49,237 nt of DNA from Octopus bimaculoides (Eukaryota). Under the pieces are notes generated by a model, which saw only the letters and a program-made list of their open reading frames with translations, had not been told where the DNA came from and did no database searches. Numbering within the stretch: the stretch's first letter is position 1; the number at the start of each line of letters is the position of its first letter. The stretch is taken from NCBI RefSeq assembly GCF_001194135.2, contig NC_068987.1:6127309-6176545 (forward strand), given 5' to 3'. Position numbers and translations under genes: made by a program. Positions 4,097 through 46,772 of the stretch are shown piece after piece.

Positions 4097-4422
4097 CATA
4101 TATATGTACATGCATATATGTGTGTTTATGTATGTATCTTCGCTTCCATTCTCTCATTGTGCTATTGATATTTCAATGAGTTTCTATTGATAAAAGTAAA
4201 TATAATTTACCAGGTATTTATATAGAGAAGATATACACGAATATGTTATTTACTATATATGTATGCCCTGTGTATATGTATGTATGTGTGTTCTTGTGTG
4301 GTTGTGTGTGAATGTATGTGTGTACGTGTATGTGTGTGAGTGTGGATGTGTGTTGTGGGTTTGAATATTAACACTTCGTCGAAGGATGCACAATAAAATG
4401 AGTCTTCAATAAATATAAATAT

Positions 4423-4556
4423 AGACGCAGGAGTGGCTGTGTGGTAAGAAGCTTGTTTCCCTACCACATGTTTCCGGGTTCAATTCAATTCCGCTGACCA
4501 ATGCCTTTTGAGTGGATTTGGTAGACGTAAACTGAAAGGAGCCTGTCGTATATATA

Positions 4557-4587
<31 letters not shown>

Positions 4588-4625
4588 TTGTCTGTCTGTG
4601 TTTGTCCCCCAACATCGCTTGACAG
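4423..4625 (+). mobile_element. SINE family A, internally deleted
   Basis: GCAGGAGTGGCTGTGTGGTAAGAAGC head, GTGGATTTGGTAGACG, internal TA/TG repeat, then TTTGTCCCCCAACATCGCTTGACA. Confidence 0.85.
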
Positions 4626-5639
4626 TAAAAGCTGACCACATTCGGAATCGAACTTGAGACATACAATGTTGAAACTAAATGAAGTGCGGTATTTAATCTT
4701 TCCAATATTTCTGCAAATTTCACTTAATTACTTGATACCAAAGTTTCAGATGTAGTAAATTTTGACAAGAGCTTTTGAAAATATTGAATATGTCAATGGA
4801 ATATTCCAAAGACTATACAGTTTTTTTCTATAATTGAATTTCTGAACATTCTGTTATTTTCATTTCTATATATTAGATTTTCTTTGCACATTGCATCTGT
4901 GAACTTTTCTCTTCAGATCAAAACTGTGGCTGCCACATTATTATATAATATAATGTAACGGAATAGAAGTAATGACAGCGCATTTCCGGTAAATCTTATT
5001 TGCAAATTCCATTCTAAAGACAGGAAGATGCGAAAGCAACCATTTCAAAGTGACATTTAGAACAGTCTTGTTCTTGTAATTGTTTGTTTTTTTAATAAAA
5101 ATTACATCTGCTTCTATCCATAGAAGTTAAATTTATAATTACTATAAATTCATACACCCATGTATTCGTGCATCTGATGTAAGCGTGTTTCAAATACTTC
5201 GTACCGTATTGTCTAGAAGCAAATTAAAAATTAAATGAAGCAGATTAAATCATATAAACAAATACACAGATTTATTCGATGTAACGAGTGAGCCTCTTGG
5301 CGGTTAGACGAACTGCTAAAACGTCAGCCAAATATCCCTCATCGAGGTTACATAGGATAATGTGATCCTATCTACATTATTTCAAGAAAAAGAAACAGAA
5401 ATGATTAAAGATGTTACCTCTTTGATCATACGTCTGCTCAGTTAGAACTGCTCTGGGCTGAAAAACAACAGAAGCCAGAAATTTCTTGGTCATTTGTGTG
5501 AAGACCTGAAGCATGATTTCGGAATAATAACCTGCTGGTTTCTGCTCTGAAGGAAAATTTATTTAAACAGAACACTTATATGCAAGTTCAACCGCTAGCT
5601 AAACCCTTTGCTAATACTAGCAGCTAATCTCTCGATTTG

Positions 5640-10865: not shown

Positions 10866-11293
10866 ATTAGGCTTTTCATATCGAGTTTTGATTTGTGTTA
10901 GAAACCTTGTCTCAAAATAAATTTTGAATCGAAGCGGAAAAGCTTGAATTCTGTGGAAAAGAGAGGACCGGTCAGATGTGTGACAAAAGGCTGGAAGTTG
11001 ATGACGAGTTGTGGTGTCACCGTTGATGGACTTAATGGCAGTAGCAACGCTGCTGCATCTGTCAGAGTTGATGTTTATGATTAGAATTGCTGTAATAAGG
11101 ATGTTTTGGTTTAAGTTATTTCTTCTTGTGATCGACACCAACGTTGTAGCATCGCTCTATAGCTACACTTGTTTCTCAAAGATAAAAGACCAGGAATAAT
11201 ATTCTTTGTGATGTGCATTCTAGTATTTTGTGAACGGCGTGGTGAAGTTGATGTCGAAGGATTGTTTTTTTTTATCTATAAGTTCTATATAAT

Positions 11294-12759: not shown

Positions 12760-13325
12760 GTCTCTTTTTCTTTCTCTCTAACACACACCAGTCTAACAAA
12801 CAACTGTATTACTTTTATTTTTCCGTAATAGCATCATTTCACATTTCATTTTATTTTTATTTGTAATTTCAACTTACTTTCCTGCCGCCAAAATATAAAT
12901 GATTTATCAGCATCCGCTGTAACAAATAAAAATAGATAAATGAATTTAACAAGAAAATTATAAGGAAGCGAATACGTAAGACATAAAAGCCTTTCTCTCT
13001 ATGAAATTCAACGAATGAAACAAACAGCAGATAATTCTCTTCCTTGCTACTTTTGAACTTCGCTAGAAATAGCTCTATACACATAGCCAGACAAGTGATT
13101 TAGAGCTTTTGAAGGGAGAAGAAAAAAAAGAAATCAATCAATTTATTGGAAACTGTTTTCAAAATGCATTTATTTTTAGAAAATGATAAATAAGTACATA
13201 AGTAAATAACGTTTGTGCGGCTTACTCGCAAACATCAACGCCATACTTGTTAATTAAATATATTTCATTCTGTGAACGTCAACCTGATAAACAACAACGT
13301 ATAGATGTTGGTTGGGTTGGATATA

Positions 13326-18485: not shown

Positions 18486-19498
18486 TCATGTGTCAAATGA
18501 AGGCGATATAGTTCTTTGTGCACGAGGTTTTATCCAGTTCTCCACAAACAGGCAGCCGGCTAAAAATATAAACACGGCCAGTAATGATGCTCCTAAGGAG
18601 CTGACCAACGCTACGATATTACTTTCCTCTTGTTTACTGTACATACTCTGAACCAGTTGCAGTCTTTTTCCTTCATTCGAGAAGAGACCAAGAAGCTTGC
18701 AACCTTTTATAAATGTAAGATCTTCATCAAATAGTCCATCGCCATCGTCGTCTTTTTGATTATTTAGTTCTTCATCTGTCCTACTGTCGCAGTCCTCATC
18801 GATGCCATTACCCAAATCTAACCTATACAAAGTGGATAGTTGTATGTTGGTCAACAATGCTACATCGGATGGATTCAGCCATGTGAATGAATCGGTAATT
18901 AAATTTCGCTTTATATTCGAAGAAGAAATCGATTCTAAAATCGAAATCAAAGTTAAGTTTGGACAATTAATCGTTGGAAAGGAATGTATCGGAAATGGAT
19001 ACATTCGCTTAAAAGTTTGGTTCACCATCCCGAAATAACCATAAAATGACACAGATTTCAAATATTTTTGCATTGTTGAATTTTTACTCTGATTTGGGTA
19101 AGTAATCGACCATTCTGCAATGTAACGATTGTAAACAGTGAAATGTTTAGAGTTATTCAATACTGGCACTGACAAAAGATTTGGTGTCGCTTCAGTAGAA
19201 CCATTGCAGTGATTGTAAAGAATAAAAGTAAAGCTTTGATAGACACTGCTTGAAGCTAATAACAGATACTTTAAGTTTAAATACTGTAAAGTTGGTGGAA
19301 TACAATGCAGCGTCATTGCGTTAGATTGGTTCAGTGTATGGTGAATGTGAGTCAGCAGCAAGACTCCTTTTTCCGAGTGAATAAAAGCGAAATCTCCTGC
19401 AGAAAGAGATAAAGAAAGCTGCTGCTGGGAAGCTTCTAATGTCTTGGATTGTTCTCCGTTTTTTGTCCGCCATGTAATCTTGGTGTCACTTTGTAAAG
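18486..19498 (-). CDS. IgGFc-binding-domain membrane protein, terminal exon with acidic repeat motif, TM helix and cytoplasmic tail
   Basis: Strong acceptor ttttttttcttttcgtag|CT at 19499, phase 1. The frame is open from 19498 (longer than the ORF track shows): ALQSDTKITW...FIHSEKGVLLL...CIPPTLQY...GNGIDEDCDSRTDEELNNQKDDDGDGLFDED...IVALVSSLGASLLAVFIFLAGCLFV...SFDT*. Spliced total 1776 nt = 591 aa + stop. Confidence 0.9.
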
Positions 19499-20009
19499 CT
19501 ACGAAAAGAAAAAAAATAGGTTAATTTTGTGCAAATGCTATGGAGTGCAACATACGTCTTCATTACTGACCCTCTTTCAGCCAACCACACTAATTTCTGC
19601 TTTCACATGAGAATATATTATCCATACATGTATTCTTTTATACATGTATGCCTATACAGGTTATATAAATGTGTTTCATCATTATTTTTCGGCGTAAACG
19701 AAGTCAACGTGAGATCGAAAGGAATTCACGAATTTCTTGGAATTGAACCCACATCAATCATGTTGAAATTATTGTCTTTCCTGATAACGCTTTTGTACCT
19801 CTTCACAGTATACACCTCTTATGCATTTACACAGAATAAGAATGTAAAGGATTCTGCAATCGAAATTCAGCCACGGCACCAAAAGACAGAAATGGTCTCG
19901 CAAATACACAAGAGTCAAAAGAAATGCAGACTTACAGTATTAATGTATCAATGGATTAAATGGAAAACAGACAAGTTACAAATAGTTTTTCTGAGTAGGG
20001 TATTCTTTT

Positions 20010-20203
20010 ATTCTCTTACTTCTTTCAGTTATTTGACTGCGGCCAGGCTGGAGCACCGCACCGCCTTTAGTCGAAAAAGTCAGCTCCAGGGCTTATTATA
20101 GCGGTCTCTTTTGCCGAACCACTAAGTTAAGGGAACGTAGACACACCGACATCGGTTATTAATCGATGGTGGGAGTGGACAAGCACAGACACACAAACAT
20201 ATA

Positions 20204-20205
<2 letters not shown>
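20010..20205 (-). mobile_element. SINE family A, 3' half
   Basis: TTTGACTGCGGCCAGGCTGGAGCACC...CTCTTTTGCCGAACCACTAAGTTA. Confidence 0.85.
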
Positions 20206-20281
<76 letters not shown>

Positions 20282-20328
20282 CATTTCTATTATAGGCACA
20301 ATGTCTGAAATTTGGGGAAGGGGGATAT

Positions 20329-20380
<52 letters not shown>

Positions 20381-20381
<1 letters not shown>

Positions 20382-20593
20382 CATTTCTATTATAGGCACA
20401 ATGCCTGAAATTTGGGGAAGGGGGATAGTCGATTACATCGACCCCAGTACTCGACTGGTGCTTAATTTATTGATCCCGAAAGGATGAAAGATAAAGTCGA
20501 TCTCGGCAGAATTTGAACTCAGAACGTAGGGACGGGCGATATACCGTTAAGCATTTCGTCCGGCGTGCTAACGATTCTGCCAGTTCGCCGCCT
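20381..20593 (-). mobile_element. SINE family B (tail type i), full length
   Basis: Reverse complement of head GGCGGCGAACTGGCAGAATCGTTAGCACGCCG, core motif TTTCATCCTTTCGGGATCAATAAATTAAG, and tail CCCCAAATTTCAGGCATTGTGCCTATAATAGAAA. Confidence 0.9.
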
Positions 20594-21464
20594 TAATAGT
20601 AATAATAATAATAATATTGAACGCACATGCACAATGTATGCGCTATGCTGGTTAGTCATCGGTCGGTTGCGTGAGAGGAAAGTCAATCACAGACAGGCAA
20701 GACAACTCAGCCAAGCTTCGTTCAGGGTCGATGGACATCGCTGTGTCGTCAATTTTGTGACTTTATTAACATCACGAATCCGAACCGAACCTGATGCAAC
20801 TTGAATAGCTTATCAATGATTACATGTAAAATAGTGCAAGAACCGTTTGCTGGTAAACCCGAAGGATGCCTACGTGGGGATAAATCCAAATATGAATTAG
20901 AAGCAGCTCGAGTGTTGTACACAATATCGAACACACATACGCTCTCTTTGTGCCTTGTTAGATCGTCGGTCGGCTGCGTGAGGGGAGAAACAATTGAATA
21001 TATGAAAGATGAGGCGATATAAATTGTATTACATTTTTCCCTGAAGGGAGAGAATAAAATTGCAGATGTATGACAATACTTTACCTTTGAGACAACTAAA
21101 AGTGACGTATACGGTGCGAACATATTACTGTGTACATCAACTTTCATCTTGGTGTGAATAAAAGGCGAAAAGTAATATTAAGAAAATTACGGAATATATA
21201 TAGAGGTATAAACTTGAACAAAATCAAAGGAAGACGAGGAAAACGAAAAGAAAATCTGAACATTAAAATAATGAATTTATTTGTAGACCAGAGAATTTAG
21301 CAGCTCTGGCAGATTGCGTTTGAAATTTCATTAGCGCATCTTTTAAGGAGATATACGACCATCACTGGCTAATAAATAGCCAACCACGCGTTAACGTTAA
21401 TAGAAAGTCAATCGAAAGATTTTTAATAAAGAGATCTTTTAAAATTTGTATATATCTTTTCTTA

Positions 21465-21690
21465 TTTTCTATTATCGTCTCTGACTTGTTTCAGTCGTTG
21501 GACTACGGCCATGCTGGAACACTGCCGTGAAGGGTTATAGTTGAACAAGTCAATACCAGTAGTTACTTTTCTTACTTTCTGGTATTTATTCTAGCTGTCT
21601 CTTTTTCGAAACCATTAAATTACGGGTACGTACAGACCACCATCTGTTGCCAGGTGATGGGCTGCAGACAAACATCGCACACACACGGGA
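21465..21690 (-). mobile_element. SINE family A, 3' half
   Basis: TTGTTTCAGTCGTTGGACTACGGCCATGCTGGAAC...TCTCTTTTTCGAAACCATTAAATTACGG. Confidence 0.8.
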
Positions 21691-21929
21691 GTAGGTGAAA
21701 TACTTTTGTTTTTGATATTTTTTAAAGTTTGAACACGAAGTAGAAAATCCCGGGGCTGTAATAGATGACACTAACACCAAAATGTCGCGCAGTGAGACTG
21801 AAACCGAAATCTCGTAATTGCAATGTGATTTTCTTAACCACCAAACAGCCAAGTGCGCCTATAAATAAATGTTTATCCAGCAGCAAAAATTGCGCGGGGC
21901 AACAGCAAATAATAACATATAACATACGT

Positions 21930-22375
21930 AGGTGCAGGCGGGCGTGGCTGTGTGGTAAGAAGCTTGCTTCCTTGTCACGTGGTTCTGGTTTCAGACTCAC
22001 TGCGTGAGACATTGGGCAAGCGTCTTCTGCTGTAGCCTCGGGCCGACCAAAGCCTTGAGAGTGGATTTGGTACACGGAAACTGAAAGAAGCCTATCGTAT
22101 ATGTGTGTTTGTGTGTGTGCGCGTGTGTGCGCGTGTGTGCATGCGTGTATATGTGTGTGAGTATGTACATCTTTGCGTCTGTGTCTGTCCCTCACCACCG
22201 CTTGACAACCGGCGTTTGTGTATGTCTAGGTCCCCGTAACCTAGTGGTTCGGCAAAAGAGGCAGATAGAATAAGTACCAGGCTTAGAAATATGTCCCGGG
22301 GTCGATTCATTCGATTAAAATGCTTTAATGCGGTGCTGTAGCATGGCTGCAATCTAATGACTGAAACAAGTAAAA
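21930..22375 (+). mobile_element. SINE family A, full length
   Basis: Complete head, internal TG tract and tail ending TGACTGAAACAAGTAAAA. Confidence 0.92.
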
Positions 22376-22427
22376 AATAACAGACATAAATAAATTAAAC
22401 AAATGATATAAAATCTAAAATATTTAC

Positions 22428-22928
22428 CCATGATATAAAGTATTGAGTTTATCTGGATCCAGTTGGGAACATACACAAAATACTGCCCAGTTAAAGTTGA
22501 AACCGGTTGAAGTGATTCAATCATCAAAATATGTTCATCGTTTTGGTGTTTTGAATATTGTCCGAAGATCACAAACACTGGCTGGTTAGCGACGAGACGA
22601 AAACCCGAGAGATTGCATTGGCATGAAATAGTAACCGTCTCAGACTCATTGAGAACTAAGACGTGAGAAGAAGGCGAGGTATTGACGAATGGTTTTAATA
22701 TTGATTTCGATGGATCATATGATGGCGGTGTGGTTAATGTTAAAGTGGTGTTGTTGTTATGACTCATAATAACCGTGAAATTGAAGTAATTTGTTCCAGG
22801 CTGCTGGGAATTTGGTAAAATCGGGATAACGTATACGTATCCCAAGCTTGATAAAGAATAGACGAGATAGACGTCGTGAAGATACTCCACATAGACACTT
22901 ATCACTTGGGATGAAGATATTTTGTAGC
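22428..22928 (-). CDS. IgGFc-binding-domain membrane protein, exon 2 (YKISSSQVISVYVEYLHDVYLVYSLSSLGYVYVIP...LSGFRLVANQPVFVIFG...LMIESLQPVSTLTGQYFVYVP)
   Basis: Acceptor ttttattttctag|GC and donor G|GTAAAT; 501 nt, phase 1-1, fully open. Motifs match my recollection of the IgGFc-binding N-terminal family (IxSxxxISVY..DxYL..xxLGxxY; DLtG..v.s.kPVaV.sG; lvEQlxPv..wG..Y). Confidence 0.88.
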
Positions 22929-23005
22929 CTAGAAAATAAAATCATGTCTCATTAAATTAGAATATATCGTTGCTTTAAGAAATTATTTAGTTATAAAACC
23001 TGAAG

Positions 23006-23230
23006 CAGTGGTTACCAACCGGCGCCCACATGACCCTTAGGGATTCACATAAGATTCCGTTGTTAAAATTTATGCACAATAAATTGGTTATGCTTTTACA
23101 ATACATAAAATATTTTTTTAGTTTTTTTATACAATATCTTATCAAATTTAATTATAAAAATACAAGAGGATCTTTTAGACATTGAATGGTTATGAGGGTC
23201 CCCTAGAGTAAAATATTAATCAAAGGGACT
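23006..23230 (+). mobile_element. Possible hAT-type MITE fragment
   Basis: Starts CAGTGGTTACCAACC, a common hAT terminus; no matching right end seen. Confidence 0.35.
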
Positions 23231-23244
23231 TTCTGCAGGGCACA

Positions 23245-23400
23245 TCTAACGAAACAAATTACCTTCGTATAAAGTTGTATGTAAAAACAACACTAAACTG
23301 CAGAATTGCTCAATATTTTTTAGGGATGCACGCTTATTAAATTTTTACATGAAAGGTCATATTGACTTGGGAGTTTCCGCCGGATACCCTTCGTGTGTGT
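23245..23400. repeat. Dispersed repeat, copy 1 (copy 2 at 28045-28190)
   Basis: Shared ACACTAAACTG.AG.ATTGCTCAATATT...GCTTATTAAA...AAAGGTCA.ATTGACTTGGGAGTTTC, each followed by (TG)n. Confidence 0.8.
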
Positions 23401-23606
23401 NNNNNNNNNNGGGGGGGGGTGCATGTGCACGTGTGTGTGCGTGTGTGTGGTTATAGGTAAAAAGTAATTGAGAACCATTGATCTAGCGGGAAACTATATC
23501 TATTTAACAATTCCTCGACTACAATTTAGATTTAATGGAATCACGCTTGCGTAATGTACGTGACAGTCAGAGACAAAATTAATGTCAAAGCTGTAAATGT
23601 TGGATC

Positions 23607-23846
23607 CAGTAATCCCTCGACTATCGCGGGTGCTACGTTCTAAAAACTCCCTGCGATAGGTGAAAATCCGTAAAGTAGAAACAGTACTGTACTGTATATT
23701 ATTATTATTATTATTATTATAATTTGTATATATCTATTTTATTACAAATGCAAAACAACACCACGGAGGAATCGGCGTAAGATTAAATAATAAGCCGCGG
23801 TAGGTGAACGATGATAGGTGAACCGCCACATGGCGAGGGATTATAG
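23607..23846 (+). mobile_element. pogo/Tigger-like MITE, copy 1
   Basis: TIR CAGTAATCCCTCG...CGAGGGATTA; homologous to 38491-38735 and 41610-41860. Confidence 0.85.
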
Positions 23847-24039
23847 TTGCGTCTTGTAAGAAATCTTTTGATAACCAAATCAATATATTTATTTTATCAT
23901 ACAGTCGTAACTCAATGAAATCTTAGGTTGGCATGCACAAGTCTAATATACCACCCGCCAAATTCACAGGAAAAGATAATTAATTGTGGATCGTAAATAA
24001 TTATGGATAAATTATTCATCTAATTTTGAAACAAAGCCA

Positions 24040-24440
24040 GCAATTTGAGGGGAGGGGAAATCGATTACATCGACCTCAGTGTTCTACTGGTATTTATTTC
24101 ATCGACTCCAAATAAATGAAAGGTAAAGTCGACCTCGGGAGAATTTGAGCCCGGAACGTAAGGCCGGAAGAATTGCCACTAAGCATTTTTTTCCGGCATG
24201 CTGATGTTTCTCCTAGCTCGCCACCTTCATATCCTTCCTATTATAGGCACAAGACATGAAATTTTGTGGTTGGTGTGTGTGGGGGGGGGGAAGCTAGTCG
24301 AATATGTCGACACCATTACTTCACTAGCACTTGTTTTATCGATCCCGAGTGTATGACAGGTAAAGTCAACCTCGGAAGATCTTCAACTCAGTACGTGAAG
24401 AACCGGAAGAAATGCTGCTTGGCATTTTGTCCGGCGCAGT
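24040..24440 (-). mobile_element. Two tandem SINE family B copies (24040-24228, 24240-24440)
   Basis: Each has the AAAGTC.ACCTCGG and GAACGTAA or GTACGTGA motifs. Confidence 0.8.
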
Positions 24441-24587
24441 TAAGATACAACCAGCTAGCTACCGTAATTAAATTAAGAAAGTATACGTGTTTGCAACGGC
24501 ACAGATTCTGAATGGGTGCCAAGTAATGGAATTAGAAGACCTTTCGTAGTCACAGTCTCAAATATATTCGAGAGGAAAGCTAAAAAT

Positions 24588-25133
24588 NNNNNNNNNNNNN
24601 NNNNNNNNNNNNNNNNNNNNNNNNNNNNNNNNNNNNNNNNNNNNNNNNNNNNNNNNNNNNNNNNNNNNNNNNNNNNNNNNNNNNNNNNNNNNNNNNNNNN
24701 NNNNNNNNNNNNNNNNNNNNNNNNNNNNNNNNNNNNNNNNNNNNNNNNNNNNNNNNNNNNNNNNNNNNNNNNNNNNNNNNNNNNNNNNNNNNNNNNNNNN
24801 NNNNNNNNNNNNNNNNNNNNNNNNNNNNNNNNNNNNNNNNNNNNNNNNNNNNNNNNNNNNNNNNNNNNNNNNNNNNNNNNNNNNNNNNNNNNNNNNNNNN
24901 NNNNNNNNNNNNNNNNNNNNNNNNNNNNNNNNNNNNNNNNNNNNNNNNNNNNNNNNNNNNNNNNNNNNNNNNNNNNNNNNNNNNNNNNNNNNNNNNNNNN
25001 NNNNNNNNNNNNNNNNNNNNNNNNNNNNNNNNNNNNNNNNNNNNNNNNNNNNNNNNNNNNNNNNNNNNNNNNNNNNNNNNNNNNNNNNNNNNNNNNNNNN
25101 NNNNNNNNNNNNNNNNNNNNNNNNNNNNNNNNN
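24588..25133. other. Assembly gap, representative of about 14 N-runs that are mostly flanked by (TA)n
   Basis: Run of N; ORFs spanning these gaps are artefacts. Confidence 0.99.
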
Positions 25134-25203
25134 TATATATATATACATACATACATTTATGCATATATAGATGTTTATATAGGTATATATATGTATATGT
25201 ATA

Positions 25204-25258
<55 letters not shown>

Positions 25259-25863
25259 AGATATAGATATGTATACACGTATATATGTGTGCATGTGTGT
25301 GCATGTATGTGTGAATTTATACGCAACACACACCTTTATTTACTTACATATACATCACATAATGGTGTGTACGCGCGTGCATGCAGGAGCATATATGAGA
25401 GTAACCTCATTCAATCTTATCACAGTTATTTATTTTATAAATATAGCCACACACACGCGCACACACATACATCCACACGCATGCACACATACACACGCGT
25501 TAGCATATGAAGAATCGAGTAAACCGTTTTAATTAGTAGCCATAAATGCAACAATGTGAATGATTAAAATCAATATATCTAACAATGGTCATTGTTAATC
25601 ATTGGATTAGTAACCCGTCGTTTTAAAGCTTGAACTTTCAATCTACTTTTGATTGCTATCATGTCTTTATTACATTATTGATCCTTCGTTGTTATCGACG
25701 ATGAGCATTTAGCTGTTCGATTAACTGGACAGCCTCATCGTTAAATTTAATATTTACACAGTAAGCATAAGAAATGCAGTGTTGTGAATAAACAAACGTT
25801 TCCTTAGTCCTGAGTCCATCCCGCGTCTGGTGGCGCATTTGGGCAGACAACGGTCTCCACTGA

Positions 25864-25905
<42 letters not shown>

Positions 25906-25909
25906 TCTC

Positions 25910-25937
<28 letters not shown>

Positions 25938-25940
<3 letters not shown>

Positions 25941-26345
25941 CAATGTTTTCCAATTTTCTGTTTATTACTGCTATGTCTGCTTTGAACGATCTGCGCCATG
26001 TTGCTTTTGGTCTTCCTCTCTTTCTCTTTCCGCTAGGTGGGTCCCATCTAAATGCTGTTTTGGCGTGCCGTTGGTCTGGCATGCGGGAAAATGTGCCCAG
26101 CTAGTCTCATTCTTCTCTCTGCCACGATGTCTTGCAGCCTTCTTGACTGTTCTCCATGGAGGACTGCAGCATTTGTGATGTGGTCGCGATAGGAGATCTT
26201 CAATATTTTCCGCAAGCACCTCTGATGGAATACATCCAGTATCTTGGATATTGTTGATGTTACTTTCCAACAAACATTTAGATCAGTTTAATATGCATGG
26301 GACGTATCTGACACGTAAAAAGGCCGCACTCAGTGTTGTTTGCCA
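25938..26345 (-). mobile_element. RTE-clade LINE, 3' fragment with (GA)n tail
   Basis: Frameshifted FHQRCLRKILKISYRDHITNAAV and AFRWDPPSGKRKRGRPKATWRRS, characteristic of the RTE ORF C-terminus. Confidence 0.88.
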
Positions 26346-26783
26346 TGGGGAAGAATTCTCAATTTAGATAATAGATGTTAGATTCTTTGCCTTGAACTTG
26401 CAAATGCAAGTGCTACCAGTTGAAAGCTCTACATACCGAATGCTAGCAAGTTTATGGGGTCATCCGGAGAAAATACGCTCACCACCTTAATAAATAAGAA
26501 TATTGATACAGGAGTGAAAAAGAAAATTCATTTCTATTAACTGATACCCGGAAGTGCATTCTTCTTTTATCATATTGCTGCCTAGTCTACCCATATTTCT
26601 TAGTGAGCAAATTACAAGTCCATCTTAATTACAATATAGAAACAGAAAGGAAAAAAATGTGTTTAGCGACGACGTTAACTTTACAACAAAGCCAAGGATG
26701 CTTGTATTTTTCATGTTTCAAACGTCGGAAATCGATGCAATTAACAAAATCAATATGTACATACGAACACTGACCCAGTGCGT

Positions 26784-26827
<44 letters not shown>

Positions 26828-27149
26828 CACACGTATATAATACACACACACGTGTAGATATGCATGCATATATGTATATAAGTATGTTTGTATCTATCTA
26901 TCTATTTATCTTTCTCTCCTCCGTCTCTCTCTTTCTATATATATATGTGTGTGTATGTGTGTATGTGTTTCTGTGTGTGTGTACGTATGTATGCATGTAT
27001 TTCGCCAGTATGGATGTATATATGTATCTATCTATTTATCTTTCTCTTCTTTCTCTCTCTCTCTATATATGTATGTGTATGTCTATACGTCGTATGTGTG
27101 TGTGTGTACCTCGTATACGAATATATGTGTATGTATGTTTATGTGTACG

Positions 27150-27354
27150 TTTATCTCCCTACCACTTGACAATCCGTCTTTACTTAAGTCCCCAAAACGA
27201 AGCGGTTGAATTAAAGAATTCGACAGAATACCTATCAGATATTAAATTATTAATGAGAGTGATGTGTTTGACTAAACCCTTCAATGCAATGCTGCAGCAT
27301 GGCCGCAATCCAGTAACTGAAACAAATAAAACAATAAAAGCTTACACACACATT

Positions 27355-27394
<40 letters not shown>

Positions 27395-27570
27395 NNNNNN
27401 NNNNNNNNNNNNNNNNNNNNNNNNNNNNNNNNNNNNNNGCAGGAGTGGCTGTGTGGTAAGTAGCTTGCTTTCCCACTATGGTTCAGTCCCACTGCATGGC
27501 ACTTTGGGCAAGTGTCTTCTACTATAGCCTCGGGTCGACCAAAGCCTTGTGAGTGGATTTCGTAGACGTT
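27150..27570 (+). mobile_element. SINE family A fragments: 3' half 27150-27345 and 5' half 27439-27570, separated by a gap
   Basis: Family A motifs on both sides of the (TA)n tract and N gap. Confidence 0.8.
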
Positions 27571-27637
27571 TTCCACGGACAAACAAACAAACACGACTGA
27601 AAACAATACCTCCGCCTTCGCTAAGACGGAGGTAACA
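27569..27637 (-). mobile_element. Helentron-associated (HINE-like) element terminus
   Basis: Minus strand TTGTTACCTCCGTC-TTAGCGAA-GGCGGAGGTA-TTGTTTTCAGTCGTGTTTGTTTGTTTGTCCGT: subterminal hairpin followed by a (TTTG)n tract, as recalled for non-autonomous Helentrons. Confidence 0.55.
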
Positions 27638-27981
27638 AAGATGCTCTAGAAAAGTGACGCGTAACTTACATTAACAATTTCATGGGTAAACTGTTGCTGG
27701 ACTCACGCCTATGAGATCATGCACGTAGTACTTATGAGTATGGTTATTACATAAGTTAGAGCCGTCTTGAAACAGATGTCGAGATGTGACTTTACATAAT
27801 TCGCTTCAGCTTCGTTTATTTTCTTCGTATTTTGTAATCTGTATTTTGTGTTCTTAAAGCTAATTTCGATACCGAGGTGCTGATCCTAGAGAGAATAATT
27901 TCCCATTCACTTGAGCACTAGCCTGTGATATTTACATTAAACTTATATCATTTTCTCCTACTCTCTACCTCTCTCTCACCC

Positions 27982-28044
<63 letters not shown>

Positions 28045-28049
<5 letters not shown>

Positions 28050-28184
28050 TGCTTTCCTATATAACGTTGTATATAAAGACACTAAACTGAAGGATTGCTC
28101 AATATTATTTTAGGGGTGCATGCTTATTAAACTTTTACAAGAAGAAAGGTCACATTGACTTGGGAGTTTCGGCCTGATATCCTT

Positions 28185-28190
<6 letters not shown>
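28045..28190. repeat. Dispersed repeat, copy 2
   Basis: Aligns by eye to 23245-23400 in the same orientation. Confidence 0.8.
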
Positions 28191-28233
<43 letters not shown>

Positions 28234-28938
28234 GTGTGTGCGTGTGTGTGTACTTGTGTGTGCGTGTGTGTGTGTGTGTGTGTATGTATGTGTGTGTGCA
28301 CTTATATATATGTATTATTTTATATGCATATACATACATGTTTTTATATATGTATGTGCGTGAGAGAAATGTGTGAGTATATGTGTGAAAGAGAGAGAGA
28401 AAAATAGAAAGAGAGCGAAAGCGAAAGAGAGGGAGAGAGAGAAAGCGAAAGAGAGAGAGAGAGAGAAAGAGAGAGAACTCATTATTTTAGAGTAATTCCC
28501 AGATATTGTTAATATGCACACTCTTATAAGTTCGATCTGACAATATATTTGAGCACTTTTTCAACGACGGTACAGTTATCAATCATCAATATTTTCTGGT
28601 CGTTCTCATTCCGAATCACTTCCAATGTTTGTACAAGATGCAATCGGTTGCTTTAAATATATATTCTAGCTACAATAATCTTTCAAAATGTCTGAATTTT
28701 ATTTATAACACTAACTCGGTGAATCGAAAGTTAATTAAATGCTACCAAGATTTACCGACTTAACCGTAAAGCACAACACCAACTCAAGCAACAAATTATC
28801 CGGTCCGTTTCCATTACCACTAATGCGGTGCTTAACCGGCAATATATATGACAGTAAATGTATTATATCATGTACGAACTTACGAATCTGATAGGATAGA
28901 GACCGTGATGTAGAATAGATATTTGTATAAACAGTTTC

Positions 28939-28983
28939 CTCTGCTTCGCTCCTGCTTCGCTCCTGCTTCGCTCCTGCTTCGCT
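28939..28983 (+). repeat. 11-bp tandem repeat (CTGCTTCGCTC) x4
   Basis: Direct reading. Confidence 0.9.
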
Positions 28984-29168
28984 TTTGTTTTTACTTGAAC
29001 ATCTTTTTCCAAGTTATATTANNNNNNNNNNNNNNNNNNNNNNNNNNNNNNNNNNNNNNNNNNNNNNNNNNNNNNNNNNNNNNNNNNNNNNNNNNNNNNN
29101 NNNNNNNNNNNNNNNNNNNNNNNNNNNNNNNNNNNNNNNNNNNNNNNNNNNNNNNNNNNNNNNNNNNN

Positions 29169-29206
<38 letters not shown>

Positions 29207-29925
29207 AATATAGGAGTATATGCATATATATGTACATGTATGTATATACGTTCATCCACATGTACATATAGATACATAACTGGATACATGACGTGGCAAA
29301 AGAACAAGGACAAAAATGGTAAACAAGGTGCAACAAACAAGCAGGCCACATAGAAACATCCCCTTCATCAGCTGCCACCATTAAAGCTCCGGCGTTAAGC
29401 ATATATTGTAGATGTATGCATATACAAGCGCATACATGCATGCATGCACAACAAACACATTTTGTTCTTGGACAAGAAATGAAATAACAAATACAAGAGT
29501 CAGAAATATCGCTAAGAGAAATTAGTTGGGTCATGTGATCATTTTTTGTTAGTTGTGTTATATGGGTCATATCTTGTTAATTGGGTCATGTGGTCATGGC
29601 TTGTTTTTTTGTTTTGGACAATTGTCAGAGTCGGTTGAGCATCAGATGAAATATCTCGTGATATTTATTATTTCCGCGTTTTTCTGCTCGTTGTGAATTT
29701 TGACAAGTTTAACGTCATTTTACTCCTTCAGAATTCGATCTCAGTCTAGGGTGGTTGGCTGGTGGAATCGATAAAGCATTTATGAGATATCTTGTGCCAT
29801 TTGTTCTCAGTGAACCAATATTCCTGTGAAAAAAATAATTGTACTAAATACCTGAGAAGCCTTATTCAAATATGGCTTTTCAGGTATTTAGTACTACATT
29901 AGAATATGGCATAGCAACTACTCAC

Positions 29926-30187
29926 CGCTTGTAAGATTCTCATCCAGACTGTATTCTCCACAGGGTAATGTAAAGGACCGAATATTATTGCCATCTAGCA
30001 TAAATGTCATAGACGTTTCTGTAGAAAAGACCTTGATTTCTGTTAGTTGTGAAGTCATTGACCAAATCTTTATGTGGATTCCTTTGGTATATTTGCAGAA
30101 AACATTTGGTATTAGAAAATGCGTCCCACTTGATTGGTTGCATAGCGATCCTGGAAAGAAAATAATGATGGATAAAACTTCAATCAT
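29926..30187 (-). CDS. IgGFc-binding-domain membrane protein, first clear coding exon (MIEVLSIIIFFPGSLCNQSSGTHFLIP...ENLTSG)
   Basis: ATG at 30187 with an in-frame TAA just upstream; hydrophobic signal-like stretch; strong phase-1 donor G|GTGAGT at 29925; joins exon 2 in frame. True 5' boundary uncertain (alternative acceptor giving a start at 30177). Confidence 0.75.
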
Positions 30188-30480: not shown

Positions 30481-32169
30481 CATTGTTTTATCACTCTCTT
30501 GTCGGGAGCGGGCTGAATGGAACACAAAGTTTGTTTAAACGGAATCATTTTTCACAAGTTAGTCTAAAGTTTTCAGAACTCTATACAAATGAATAAATAA
30601 AAATAGGTGCAATCGATGTGGTTGCGGTTCAATTTGAATATTATTCGGTCGATGTTTCAAAGAAAAAAGCGAAAGGAAAACTTTGATCGCAGATCTGGTG
30701 ATAAAGAATTGGGGTAACTGTTTATCACAACGGGTGAATTGTGAGAGTCTGTAACAGAAAAATGAGTGGGAGAGATTTGTGGATTAATTAGACCAAAGCA
30801 GAACTATGTAGGTTGGTCTGATCGTCTATAAACTTTATGATTAATTCATGTAAATTTTCTAACAAAATGACAACAGACAGCGCACATAATGTCACTGTAC
30901 ATGTAACAGTAATAAACGTGAAAGCAGTTTCAATCAGGTGGGACCACTGCGCATTATAATACCTTCTAAAGCCGTCTGATTTTCAACATGGCCAAGCATT
31001 TATTCCGCAACAGATTTCCTAATTATATAGGATGAAAGCATCAATTTACTGATGAAGGTTTTTCTAAATATCAGAATGTTTCAAAACGCGTGATAGAGTT
31101 CTAGTAATATCTATGAAACGGTTCTGCTTTTACACTCATAAATATCGCAGACTACATTTAAATGAATGCATCATCACTCGCCATCAAGTTCCAACCACTA
31201 ACTGTTTCTTTTCTCTCTTTTATCGGTAATGTTACTGTAACAGCTTTTGAATCTCTGGAGTAGCTCAATCAGAGCCCCCCATCCGCCCAATTTCACTTAG
31301 TTTTTGTCTCTTCTCACATTAACTTTTAAAATATGATGCGTAATCCACGTATTAATCACTTAATCTATCTATCCCTTCTTATATATGAAGCTCTGTGCTA
31401 TCTCTAATTCACTGTCTACAAATATATTGTTGTTACAATAAATCATAGGGTGAGTAACCTGCAAATCTTTGGCCACACGAGGCCCGTGTGGCCATTAAGT
31501 GCGGCGTTCTGGAGAAGTGTGAATTTTGTATTAAAATATACATAATTACGTATGACTAAAAATGTTCAGATCTTTCTAATGAGTAAGAAAAACATCAAAT
31601 ATATATATATTGTGCACCTTTCTTTATTTTTCGTGTGATTTCAAATTCAAAATTCTAGTCTCACCAAGATTTTTCTAGAAGTGATTATCTCCCTTACAAT
31701 AACTGGCCACTAGGGCACGTTACATTTTTATATTTTTCATTACATATTTATTAATAGACTCGGATTATTTTCTAGAGCCAACTTAATATATACAGTCGAC
31801 AACTTTTATGAATACACCGTATTGTAGTATCACACATGGTTTTATAAACGATGTAGGAGCTTCGCAATATGTTTCACCTTTATCATCATATTCCTCCTCC
31901 TCCTCCTTCCTCCTTCCTTCTTTTTCTCTTCCCCTTTTCTCCTTAGCATTGTCGATATCGTCCTCTTTGTCGTCGTCTCTCCCGCTACCATTTATAATTC
32001 AATGTATTAGTCAACCCACAGAGAATAAATCTATTTAATTACCTTTAAAGTGGTACGCCAAACATAATCCGATGCTCATGGTAAACACTGGAAAAGAAAT
32101 GGAAATCTATCAGGAAACAAGAACTGCAATACGAACAAGCAGACACAAAGCAGCAGGCAGCACGATCGA

Positions 32170-36985: not shown

Positions 36986-37375
36986 CTATGTGCATGTATA
37001 TATATAAATTATAATCCGATGCTTTATAAACAGAGACTAGTAATAACCACATAATTTACTTGGATATTGTATCTTTTAAGGTTTCAGTTTACTTCAGACA
37101 GTTTAAATAGAATTTATACAATGAAGTCCTTCACAATATTGTCTGTTTCCTTCAATTTTTCCCTTATTTAATGGTAGGAAAGAACAGCCATTAAGTTGAT
37201 AATAATGGCGAACTAAGACTTGAACATTACTGAACTAATAAAATAGATATAGTCTACTATTTTATAGTTTATCATTAACCTCGTTATACATCCCATTTCG
37301 CCTTTATTACATTTATTTGGTTATTTAATTAGTGACTTACTCCTGACTTGTGAAATAAAATATTTGGATATTTAT

Positions 37376-37547
37376 AGGCGCATGAGTAGTTGTGTGGTAG
37401 GTAGCTCGCTTACCAACCACATGGTTCCGGGTTCAGTCCCAATGCGTGGCACTTTGGGCAAGAGTCTTCTGCTATAGCCTCGGGCCGACCAAAGCCTAGT
37501 GAGTGGATTTGGTAGACGGAAACTGAAAGAATCCCGTCGTATATATG

Positions 37548-37587
<40 letters not shown>

Positions 37588-37795
37588 AATGTATGTTTGT
37601 GTGTTTGTGCTTGTCCTCCCAACATCGCTTGACATCGATGATGGTGTGTTTACGTCCCCATAACCTAGCAGTTCGGCAAAAGAGCCGATAGAATAAGTAC
37701 TAGGCTTACAAAGAATAAGTTCTGGGGTCGATTTGCTCGACTAAAGGTAGTGCTCCAGCATGGCCGCAGTCAAATGACTGAAAGAAGTAAAAGAA
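37376..37795 (+). mobile_element. SINE family A, full length, near consensus
   Basis: Complete head (A box, B box GGTTCAGTCCC), microsatellite core and tail. Confidence 0.93.
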
Positions 37796-46621: not shown

Positions 46622-46772
46622 ATATTGAGTGTTTGTTTTCTCCGCTGCTCGTCATTTCAATATTGTTTCCTGAATTTATGAGGTGAAACGTTCGTTCAAA
46701 ACTTCTTTTTACTTGCAATTTTAATGAGAAAACCGTTATATTGTCCGTTGGTGTTTCTATAAAGATGCATTG
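46622..46772 (-). other. Candidate upstream exon, possibly the first coding exon (MTSSGENKHSI) of the IgGFc-type gene
   Basis: Long polypyrimidine acceptor ...tttttatattttaaag|C, donor T|GTAAGA, ATG at 46655, phase-1 end. Confidence 0.35.

Follow-up and report, generated by a model that had tools for sequence, protein, structure and literature searches.

FCGBP is a secreted protein of 2,583 amino acids (aa) in mouse and 5,405 aa in human, built from 7–13 VWD assemblies and subject to GDPH autocleavage (PMC8267560). Here we describe LOC106870668, a gene of Octopus bimaculoides that lies within a 49,237-base stretch of DNA (the window; 35.7% G+C, 14 runs of N), where it runs on the minus strand from 46655 to 18486 in five coding exons. 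Its product shares with FCGBP a homologous beta-rich N-terminal domain (PF17517, above threshold) and is likewise predicted to be extracellular and glycosylated, but it is only 605 aa long, appears to be membrane-anchored and has neither VWD assemblies nor GDPH. A sequence-only reading of the region 18486–30187 had proposed a 591-aa, membrane-anchored and divergent member of this domain family. Literature searches with the gene, its accessions, PF17517, and "IgGFc-binding protein" combined with octopus or mollusc returned nothing on a membrane-anchored architecture.

Closer in layout are proteins of Lingula anatina (XP_013407689.1), Branchiostoma (∼570 aa), Pecten (XP_033752766.1), Patella (XP_055957719.1) and Liolophura (XP_064601055.1), whose parts follow the same order as in the octopus protein. 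The Lingula, Branchiostoma and molluscan proteins have in common the acidic motif GDG-x-DNDCDG-x-IDEE...DDDGDG-x-IDED, and the molluscs also share a pattern in the transmembrane (TM) helix and tail. The octopus protein differs from all of these in its low identity (20–30%), in the lack of a Cys upstream of the motif and in the stretch that separates PF17517 from the motif, which is enlarged and poorly conserved. Based on this comparison and the analyses below, we consider it likely that LOC106870668 encodes a 605-aa type I membrane glycoprotein, a Ca2+-stabilised module for adhesion or recognition at the cell surface that would need a partner for any signalling.

Protein architecture and the double acidic motif

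The window is the reverse complement of O. bimaculoides chromosome CM046607.1 in assembly GCA_001194135.2, gaps included (40,752 bases compared). Translation of the five-exon splice from the window is identical to the database product XP_014772304.1 (605 aa, "uncharacterized protein LOC106870668 isoform X1"), and the UniProt name for the product of this gene (A0A0L8HHF3) is "IgGFc-binding protein N-terminal domain-containing protein". In the predicted layout, a cleavable signal peptide leads into an all-beta ectodomain of ∼470 aa containing PF17517. Next come a nearly invariant double acidic motif and a stalk of ∼35 aa, and the protein ends with a TM helix and a basic tail.

A Pfam scan of the protein at E ≤ 10 detected PF17517 and nothing else, with no VWD, C8 or TIL. 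The IgGFc-binding domain named by the sequence-only reading is therefore present: it matches residues 122–361 (profile positions 3–238 of 297) at 61.9 bits and E = 7.6e-17, compared with a gathering cut-off of 25.6 bits, and the O. sinensis orthologue scores 64.7 bits. The domain is also as divergent as had been suggested, since a Lingula relative scores 225.6 bits and four other scanned relatives, one of them from Branchiostoma belcheri, score 231–556. Erosion of family motifs is also seen, for instance in the octopus TLTG at the place of the conserved TWG. The residues that follow the match (362–495) are expanded and were modelled with a predicted local distance difference test (pLDDT) score of 32–59. 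An FCGBP orthologue is not indicated, because VWD-C8-TIL was absent both from the protein scan and from the open reading frames (ORFs) of the window, GDPH does not occur in the protein, and a TM helix is present.

The many N-x-S/T sequons that had been pointed out number 14 in the 591-aa model. In the ectodomain of the 605-aa protein there are 15, all N-terminal of residue 452, compared with 8.2 ± 2.5 in composition shuffles, 0.8% of which reach 15. Near the C-terminus, the sequence IVALVSSLGASLLAVFIFLAGCLFV (residues 563–587; 18543..18617) forms the expected TM helix, with a Kyte–Doolittle 19-residue mean of 2.57. Windows of 19 residues scoring at least 1.6 start at residues 561–574, and one further window starts at residue 121, inside the beta ectodomain. 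The helix is followed by the 18-aa cytoplasmic tail ENWIKPRAQRTISPSFDT and the stop codon (18486..18542), with basic residues at K592, R594 and R597. From the C-terminal TM helix and the short tail we therefore read the protein as a type I surface glycoprotein and not as a secreted mucus protein, in agreement with the earlier proposal of a type I surface protein.

An AlphaFold 2 (AF2) model built with 39 family sequences had a mean pLDDT of 68 and a predicted template modelling score (pTM) of 0.66. Residues 30–340 were predicted to be all-beta at pLDDT 80–95, including the part encoded by exon 3 (80–90), and further strands extended to residue ∼438 at pLDDT 50–60. A long helix was predicted through the membrane, where the TM segment had a pLDDT of 75–92.

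The double acidic motif noted in the sequence-only reading, DEDCDSRTDEELNNQKDDDGDGLFDED, was found at 18800..18720 on the minus strand, beginning at residue 502 and consisting of two D-x-D-x-D-G-type loops. Its acidic and Cys residues are the sole invariant block of the family. The invariant columns are D502, D504, C505, D506, D510, E511, E512, D518, D520, D522, D526, E527 and D528, and the motif columns are invariant in one alignment (A1) and at least 90% conserved in another (A2). The pattern D-x-D-x-D-G-x-x-D-E is that of a calcium loop, as in EF-hand-like and thrombospondin type-3 (TSP3) loops, and each half of the motif fits it. Based on this pattern, we infer Ca2+ binding, and the octopus motif is probably a Ca2+ site.

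The same acidic pattern, D-N/E-D-C-D-G-x-x-D-E, is found in PF11617, in the teneurin Cys-rich region and in TSP3 loops. PF11617, the "putative metal-binding motif" (Cu-binding_MopE), scored above its cut-off in three relatives of the octopus protein (P0015, P0025 and P0027), one of which (P0025) has 13 copies. The teneurin Cys-rich region has itself been aligned to the MopE-type metal-binding motif (PMC3278476). By sequence, the octopus motif looks like a degenerate, putatively metal-binding motif of the MopE/teneurin type; it is a single two-loop unit and not a repeat array.

Relatives and selective constraint

An exhaustive HMMER search retrieved 81 representatives at E ≤ 1e-3. Many of them are 450–590 aa long and align over two segments, one being the N-terminal domain and the other residues ∼497–594. 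Named members come from Sinanodonta, Pecten, Mya, Dreissena, Patella (two genes), Pomacea, Nucella, Littorina, the chiton Liolophura and the brachiopod Lingula, and nearly all are labelled "uncharacterized". In these proteins a signal-like N-terminus is followed by PF17517, the motif GDG-x-DNDCDG-x-IDEE-x(4-9)-DDDGDG-x-IDED, a stalk of 30–70 aa, a hydrophobic helix and a tail of 15–33 aa. We defined a membrane-anchored subfamily by PF17517, the double D-x-D-x-D-G motif, a TM helix within ∼30–90 aa and a tail of at most ∼40 aa. The octopus protein falls within it, with its motif at residue 502, its TM helix at 563–587 and its 18-aa tail. At least 25 representative clusters share the architecture, among them ones from bivalves, gastropods, a chiton, a brachiopod and amphioxus, so the description of the octopus protein as lineage-specific did not hold.

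The TM helix and tail of the molluscan members follow the pattern S-x-[IV]-I-[AS]-[IV]-V-I-S-[IL]-x-V-A-[IL]-x-A-V-x-x-F-I-G-G...[ED]...R-R...R-[IV]-x-P, and the basic stretch and R-x-[IV]-[ST]-P of the octopus tail are common to other molluscan members. Conservation of the molluscan helix goes beyond hydrophobicity: the helix holds a G-G or A-G pair, and an acidic residue comes after the helix. Because its sequence is conserved in molluscs, the helix may contact something, hinting at a specific intramembrane partner or at oligomerisation. The TM and tail sequences of the Lingula and amphioxus proteins bear no relation to those of the molluscs, so that the anchors are not established as orthologous.

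The absence of VWD repeats, which the sequence-only reading had singled out, is real in the octopus protein but is not unusual, since most of the PF17517 proteins found lack VWD. A search seeded with Lingula showed that such proteins are abundant in amphioxus, Lingula, bivalves, a bryozoan, an annelid and many bacteria. The double motif was present in 86 of the 114 PF17517 proteins newly gathered with this seed, directly after the domain where its position was inspected, and 13 such proteins, mostly amphioxus proteins of ∼570 aa, end in a TM helix and short tail.

Among the bacterial PF17517 proteins, those of Methylomicrobium (P0136, P0139 and P0141) and Chloroflexota (P0134) are 37–40% identical to a Lingula protein (P0016) over ∼80% of its length. 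They carry a near-identical double motif directly after PF17517, e.g. DNDCDGRIDEELFNKIDDDGDGRIDED. Identity this high is unusual between extracellular proteins of animals and bacteria and points to horizontal transfer as a possibility. Unlike the octopus protein, the bacterial proteins have no eukaryotic-type TM anchor and run on into PKD, Big_1, RTX or type IX secretion system (T9SS) sorting domains. Across bacteria, PF17517 co-occurs with adhesin-type domains (PKD, Big_1, PA14, RTX and T9SS sorting). Taken together, the domain, motif and anchor place the octopus protein, on sequence grounds, as a divergent molluscan-branch member of a widespread group of membrane-anchored PF17517 proteins.

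A codon alignment with O. sinensis gave 91.6% aa identity, with a rate of synonymous substitution (dS) of 0.17, a rate of nonsynonymous substitution (dN) of 0.036 and a dN/dS of 0.21. By region, dN/dS was 0.26 in the N-domain, 0.30 in the middle region, 0.03 in the acidic motif and 0.23 in the TM helix and tail. LOC106870668 is under ordinary purifying selection and, contrary to what had been proposed, is not fast-evolving within Octopus. Because selection is purifying today despite the divergence from the family consensus, the erosion of the motifs is old and not ongoing. A pseudogene was ruled out, since the ORF is intact in three species and dN/dS is 0.21.

Exon model and surrounding sequence

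All five coding exons are on the minus strand. Exon 1 (46622..46655) encodes MTSSGENKHSI plus one nucleotide (nt), supplies the true start codon together with the putative signal-peptide n-region, and ends at the donor GTAAGA. Exon 2 (32043..32087) encodes LFTMSIGLCLAYHFK, the putative hydrophobic core, between the acceptor TTTTCCAG and the donor GTAATT, and its aa identity is 88% in O. sinensis and O. vulgaris. The putative signal peptide of exons 1 and 2 comprises the n-region MTSSGENKHS and the h-region ILFTMSIGLCLAY, with a Kyte–Doolittle 11-residue mean of 2.34 at ILFTMSIGLCL in exon 2; other family members have plain signal-like N-termini. Exon 3 (29926..30150; residues 27–101) begins the all-beta ectodomain, and this region aligns with family members from residue ∼17–32 on. 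Exon 4 (22428..22928) encodes residues 102–268, with the PF17517 match starting at 22869. Exon 5 (18486..19498) encodes residues 269–605 and the stop codon, and takes in PF17517 up to 19221, the poorly modelled middle, the acidic motif, the stalk, the TM helix and the tail. All four introns are phase 1 and the splice sites of the extra exons are canonical. The three large exons are the sole parts of the window that resemble the protein, and the two largest of them are its longest clean ORFs.

The sequence-only reading had given exons at 30187..29926, 22928..22428 and 19498..18486, which form an open frame of 591 aa. Its junctions, taken as intron ends, are correct with GT/AG sites, and the phase 1 assignment of both introns was borne out. 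Its signal-like start did not survive: the 37 bases at 30187..30151 that were translated as MIEVLSIIIFFP are the 3′ end of intron 2 (TTTTCTTTCCAG|G), a polypyrimidine tract and CAG acceptor (TTATTTTCTTTCCAG|GATCG; 30151..30187, minus strand) that is non-coding in the annotated model. In O. sinensis the supposed ATG is ATA, and the acceptor is kept. The database protein differs from the 591-aa model at the N-terminus only, with MTSSGENKHSILFTMSIGLCLAYHFK in place of MIEVLSIIIFFP. Because the annotated product starts at 46655, the gene reaches 16.5 kb past the upper coordinate that had been given.

Two minus-strand segments, 31807–31890 and 30961–31065, match alternative 5′ exons of O. vulgaris models at 61% and 91% aa identity. 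Neither encodes a signal peptide, and both may be alternative exons of the 5′ untranslated region, e.g. of RefSeq isoform X2 with an internal Met start. At the other end of the gene, two further segments correspond to downstream exons of O. vulgaris models; that at 12873–12914 is 100% conserved at the nucleotide level and that at 11114–11272 is ∼75% identical at the protein level. These exons may belong to another transcript or be non-coding. The sequence AATAAA, 29 nt past the stop codon, was dropped as a polyadenylation signal, as it reads AAGAAA in O. sinensis and O. vulgaris. One Logan contig (L005) was ruled out as a transcript of a close relative because it is unspliced genomic DNA that runs on into the intron upstream of exon 5, and another (L006) gave no tblastn signal.

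Intron 3 (22929..29925) contains four assembly gaps (23401–23410, 24588–25133, 27395–27438 and 29022–29168) together with microsatellites and transposon fragments. As all four gaps are inside this intron, no reading frame crosses any of them. They could not be resolved with GCA_001194135.2, since the window equals that assembly base for base, gaps included. The flanks of the gaps at 29022, 27395 and 24588 align to the O. sinensis intron, which has no gaps, without any change of order or orientation. For the 10-N gap at 23401, ∼1 kb of surrounding sequence gave no alignment to the O. sinensis locus, and the outer anchors alone are collinear. The O. sinensis and O. vulgaris loci contain no N and preserve both the set and the order of the exons. 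Compared with the O. sinensis orthologue or distant family members, no residues are missing where exon 3 joins exon 4, and O. sinensis has no extra residues there. The same three large exons and exon boundaries were also seen in a homologue of ∼29% identity on a metagenome-assembly contig (L004; ENA ERZ21867824, contig ctg108503l, 7–9394, 35.6% G+C), which has an octopus-like tail, ...RRSTSVSPIFEDW. This contig probably stems from the host, another cephalopod or mollusc.

Where listed ORFs span the edges of gaps, the edges are bordered by TA or CA microsatellites (e.g. CVCVCV ORFs), so the gaps look like assembly breaks at simple repeats and not like lost unique sequence. A dispersed repeat is present on the minus strand at ∼21725–22225, 27250–27606, 4409–4723 and 37375–37740, each copy with a microsatellite tail. 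Its conceptual translation is ...IHSQGFGRPEA..ED.CP..HAV.L.....ASFLPHSHS...., and it is probably SINE-like (short interspersed nuclear element). ORFs of the retroelement-fragment type (…KRKRGRPKATWRRSFKADI…) are found inside intron 3 at 25804–26282 (minus strand).

Proposed function and alternative explanations

In the mechanism that we propose, the two acidic loops would bind Ca2+ and make the joint between the beta ectodomain and the stalk more rigid, as D-x-D-x-D-G loops do in thrombospondin type-3 repeats and in the Cys-rich motifs of teneurin and MopE. The glycosylated ectodomain would be held at the cell surface, where it may bind an extracellular ligand such as matrix, mucus or glycan; a role in adhesion or recognition is suggested by the adhesin-type domains that accompany PF17517 in bacteria. 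Because the tail is too short to signal alone, signalling or sorting would go through a partner that touches the conserved TM helix and the R-x-[IV]-[ST]-P tail. Immunoglobulin binding would not be expected.

Several observations weigh against this interpretation. The isolated 60-aa motif fragment of the octopus protein scored 16.9 bits on PF11617 (E = 0.0075), below the 27-bit cut-off, which the equivalent Lingula fragment passes at 28.4 bits. The cephalopod members lack the Cys that all other members have 10–12 residues upstream of the motif and instead carry one just after it. In the structural model, residues 441–500 are poorly resolved and the motif has a pLDDT of 55–64, the two together spanning 32–64. 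Foldseek searches of the PDB with both AF2 models returned generic multi-beta-sandwich arrays, with a TM-score of at most 0.13, among them pilins, MG domains of complement and alpha-2-macroglobulin, and an RTX adhesin. The exception was a local 111-residue match to TM1070 of unknown function, and none of the matches was used for function. Sequence searches of the PDB, with the single sequence and with a profile, gave no match. With generic matches and no solved relative found, the fold gives no functional clue beyond that of a beta-rich extracellular module. The signal peptide was assigned by a hydrophobicity heuristic, and the O. sinensis model begins at a Met within exon 2, an internal start that leaves a short h-region. 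Finally, the TM helix is missing from two O. vulgaris gene models.

These models, CAI9725227/8, leave the last exon at GAAA|GTATGC after ...SSNEGE, before the TM helix, and add two downstream exons encoding a 68-aa tail without a TM segment. Both tail exons and their AG/GT splice sites are kept in the window (12914..12873 and 11272..11114, minus strand), as would fit a main product that is soluble, a secreted matrix or mucus component like FCGBP, with the TM segment skipped by splicing or cut off in the stalk. However, the donor in O. bimaculoides exon 5 is GACTGC; it has no GT, and the O. vulgaris-type splice is therefore impossible at that position in O. bimaculoides. In addition, the O. vulgaris models are "hypothetical predicted" ones whose 5′ end lacks a signal peptide and is implausible, and the alternative tail is ∼75% conserved compared with ∼92% for the main coding sequence. 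Across molluscs, sequence conservation extends to the TM helix and tail, a region with a dN/dS of 0.23, and we regard a soluble main product as improbable. More improbable still is a far larger FCGBP- or mucin-like gene of which LOC106870668 would be a fragment, although vertebrate FCGBP does continue into VWD repeats and the 14 assembly gaps of the window, or sequence further downstream, could in principle house VWD exons. Gapless O. sinensis and the family at large retain the stop codon, TM helix and tail. When all six frames of the window were screened for Cys-rich ORFs and GDPH, only microsatellite noise and one out-of-context intronic GDPH turned up. Nothing else in the window resembles the octopus protein, and in three species no further gene is called within 10 kb. 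With no VWD-like sequence in the window and no gene within 10 kb, this reading is excluded for practical purposes.

Divergence of the octopus protein could also be explained by a rapidly evolving, cephalopod-specific immune receptor under diversifying selection. The low PF17517 score, the eroded motifs (TWG to TLTG) and the many sequons would fit, as would the ∼29% identity of the only other cephalopod-like homologue found, on the metagenome contig L004. Diversifying selection is at odds with the dN/dS of 0.21 between O. bimaculoides and O. sinensis, and cephalopod specificity with a family that spans Mollusca and an architecture that is also found in Lingula and amphioxus. Tandem paralogues of LOC106870668 were not found in the 49-kb window, and no annotated neighbour gene lies within 10 kb in three species. 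The Pfam scan detected no immune domain in the octopus protein. The immune connotation of the sequence-only reading is unsupported. We consider such a receptor very unlikely. In favour of the Ca2+-stabilised surface glycoprotein stand the conserved architecture and the constraint on the motif.

A broader idea, which we put forward tentatively and hold to be doubtful, is that PF17517 and the double motif form one Ca2+-dependent binding unit that is used in single-pass receptors of molluscs, brachiopods and amphioxus, with the conserved TM helix recruiting a partner, and that is shared, perhaps by horizontal transfer, with surface proteins of methanotrophs and Chloroflexota. If so, the octopus gene would be a divergent member of an unstudied receptor class.

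For annotation, the value of these results is corrective: the automatic RefSeq/UniProt name implies IgG binding, for which there is no support, and the true start lies 16.5 kb upstream of the one noted before. For the family, the FCGBP N-terminal domain is found repeatedly in type I membrane form among several invertebrate phyla, always together with the strictly conserved acidic motif and, in molluscs, also with a conserved TM helix. The LOC106870668 protein is a reasonable candidate for a Ca2+-dependent surface adhesion or recognition molecule and could help to define the role of the FCGBP N-terminal domain.

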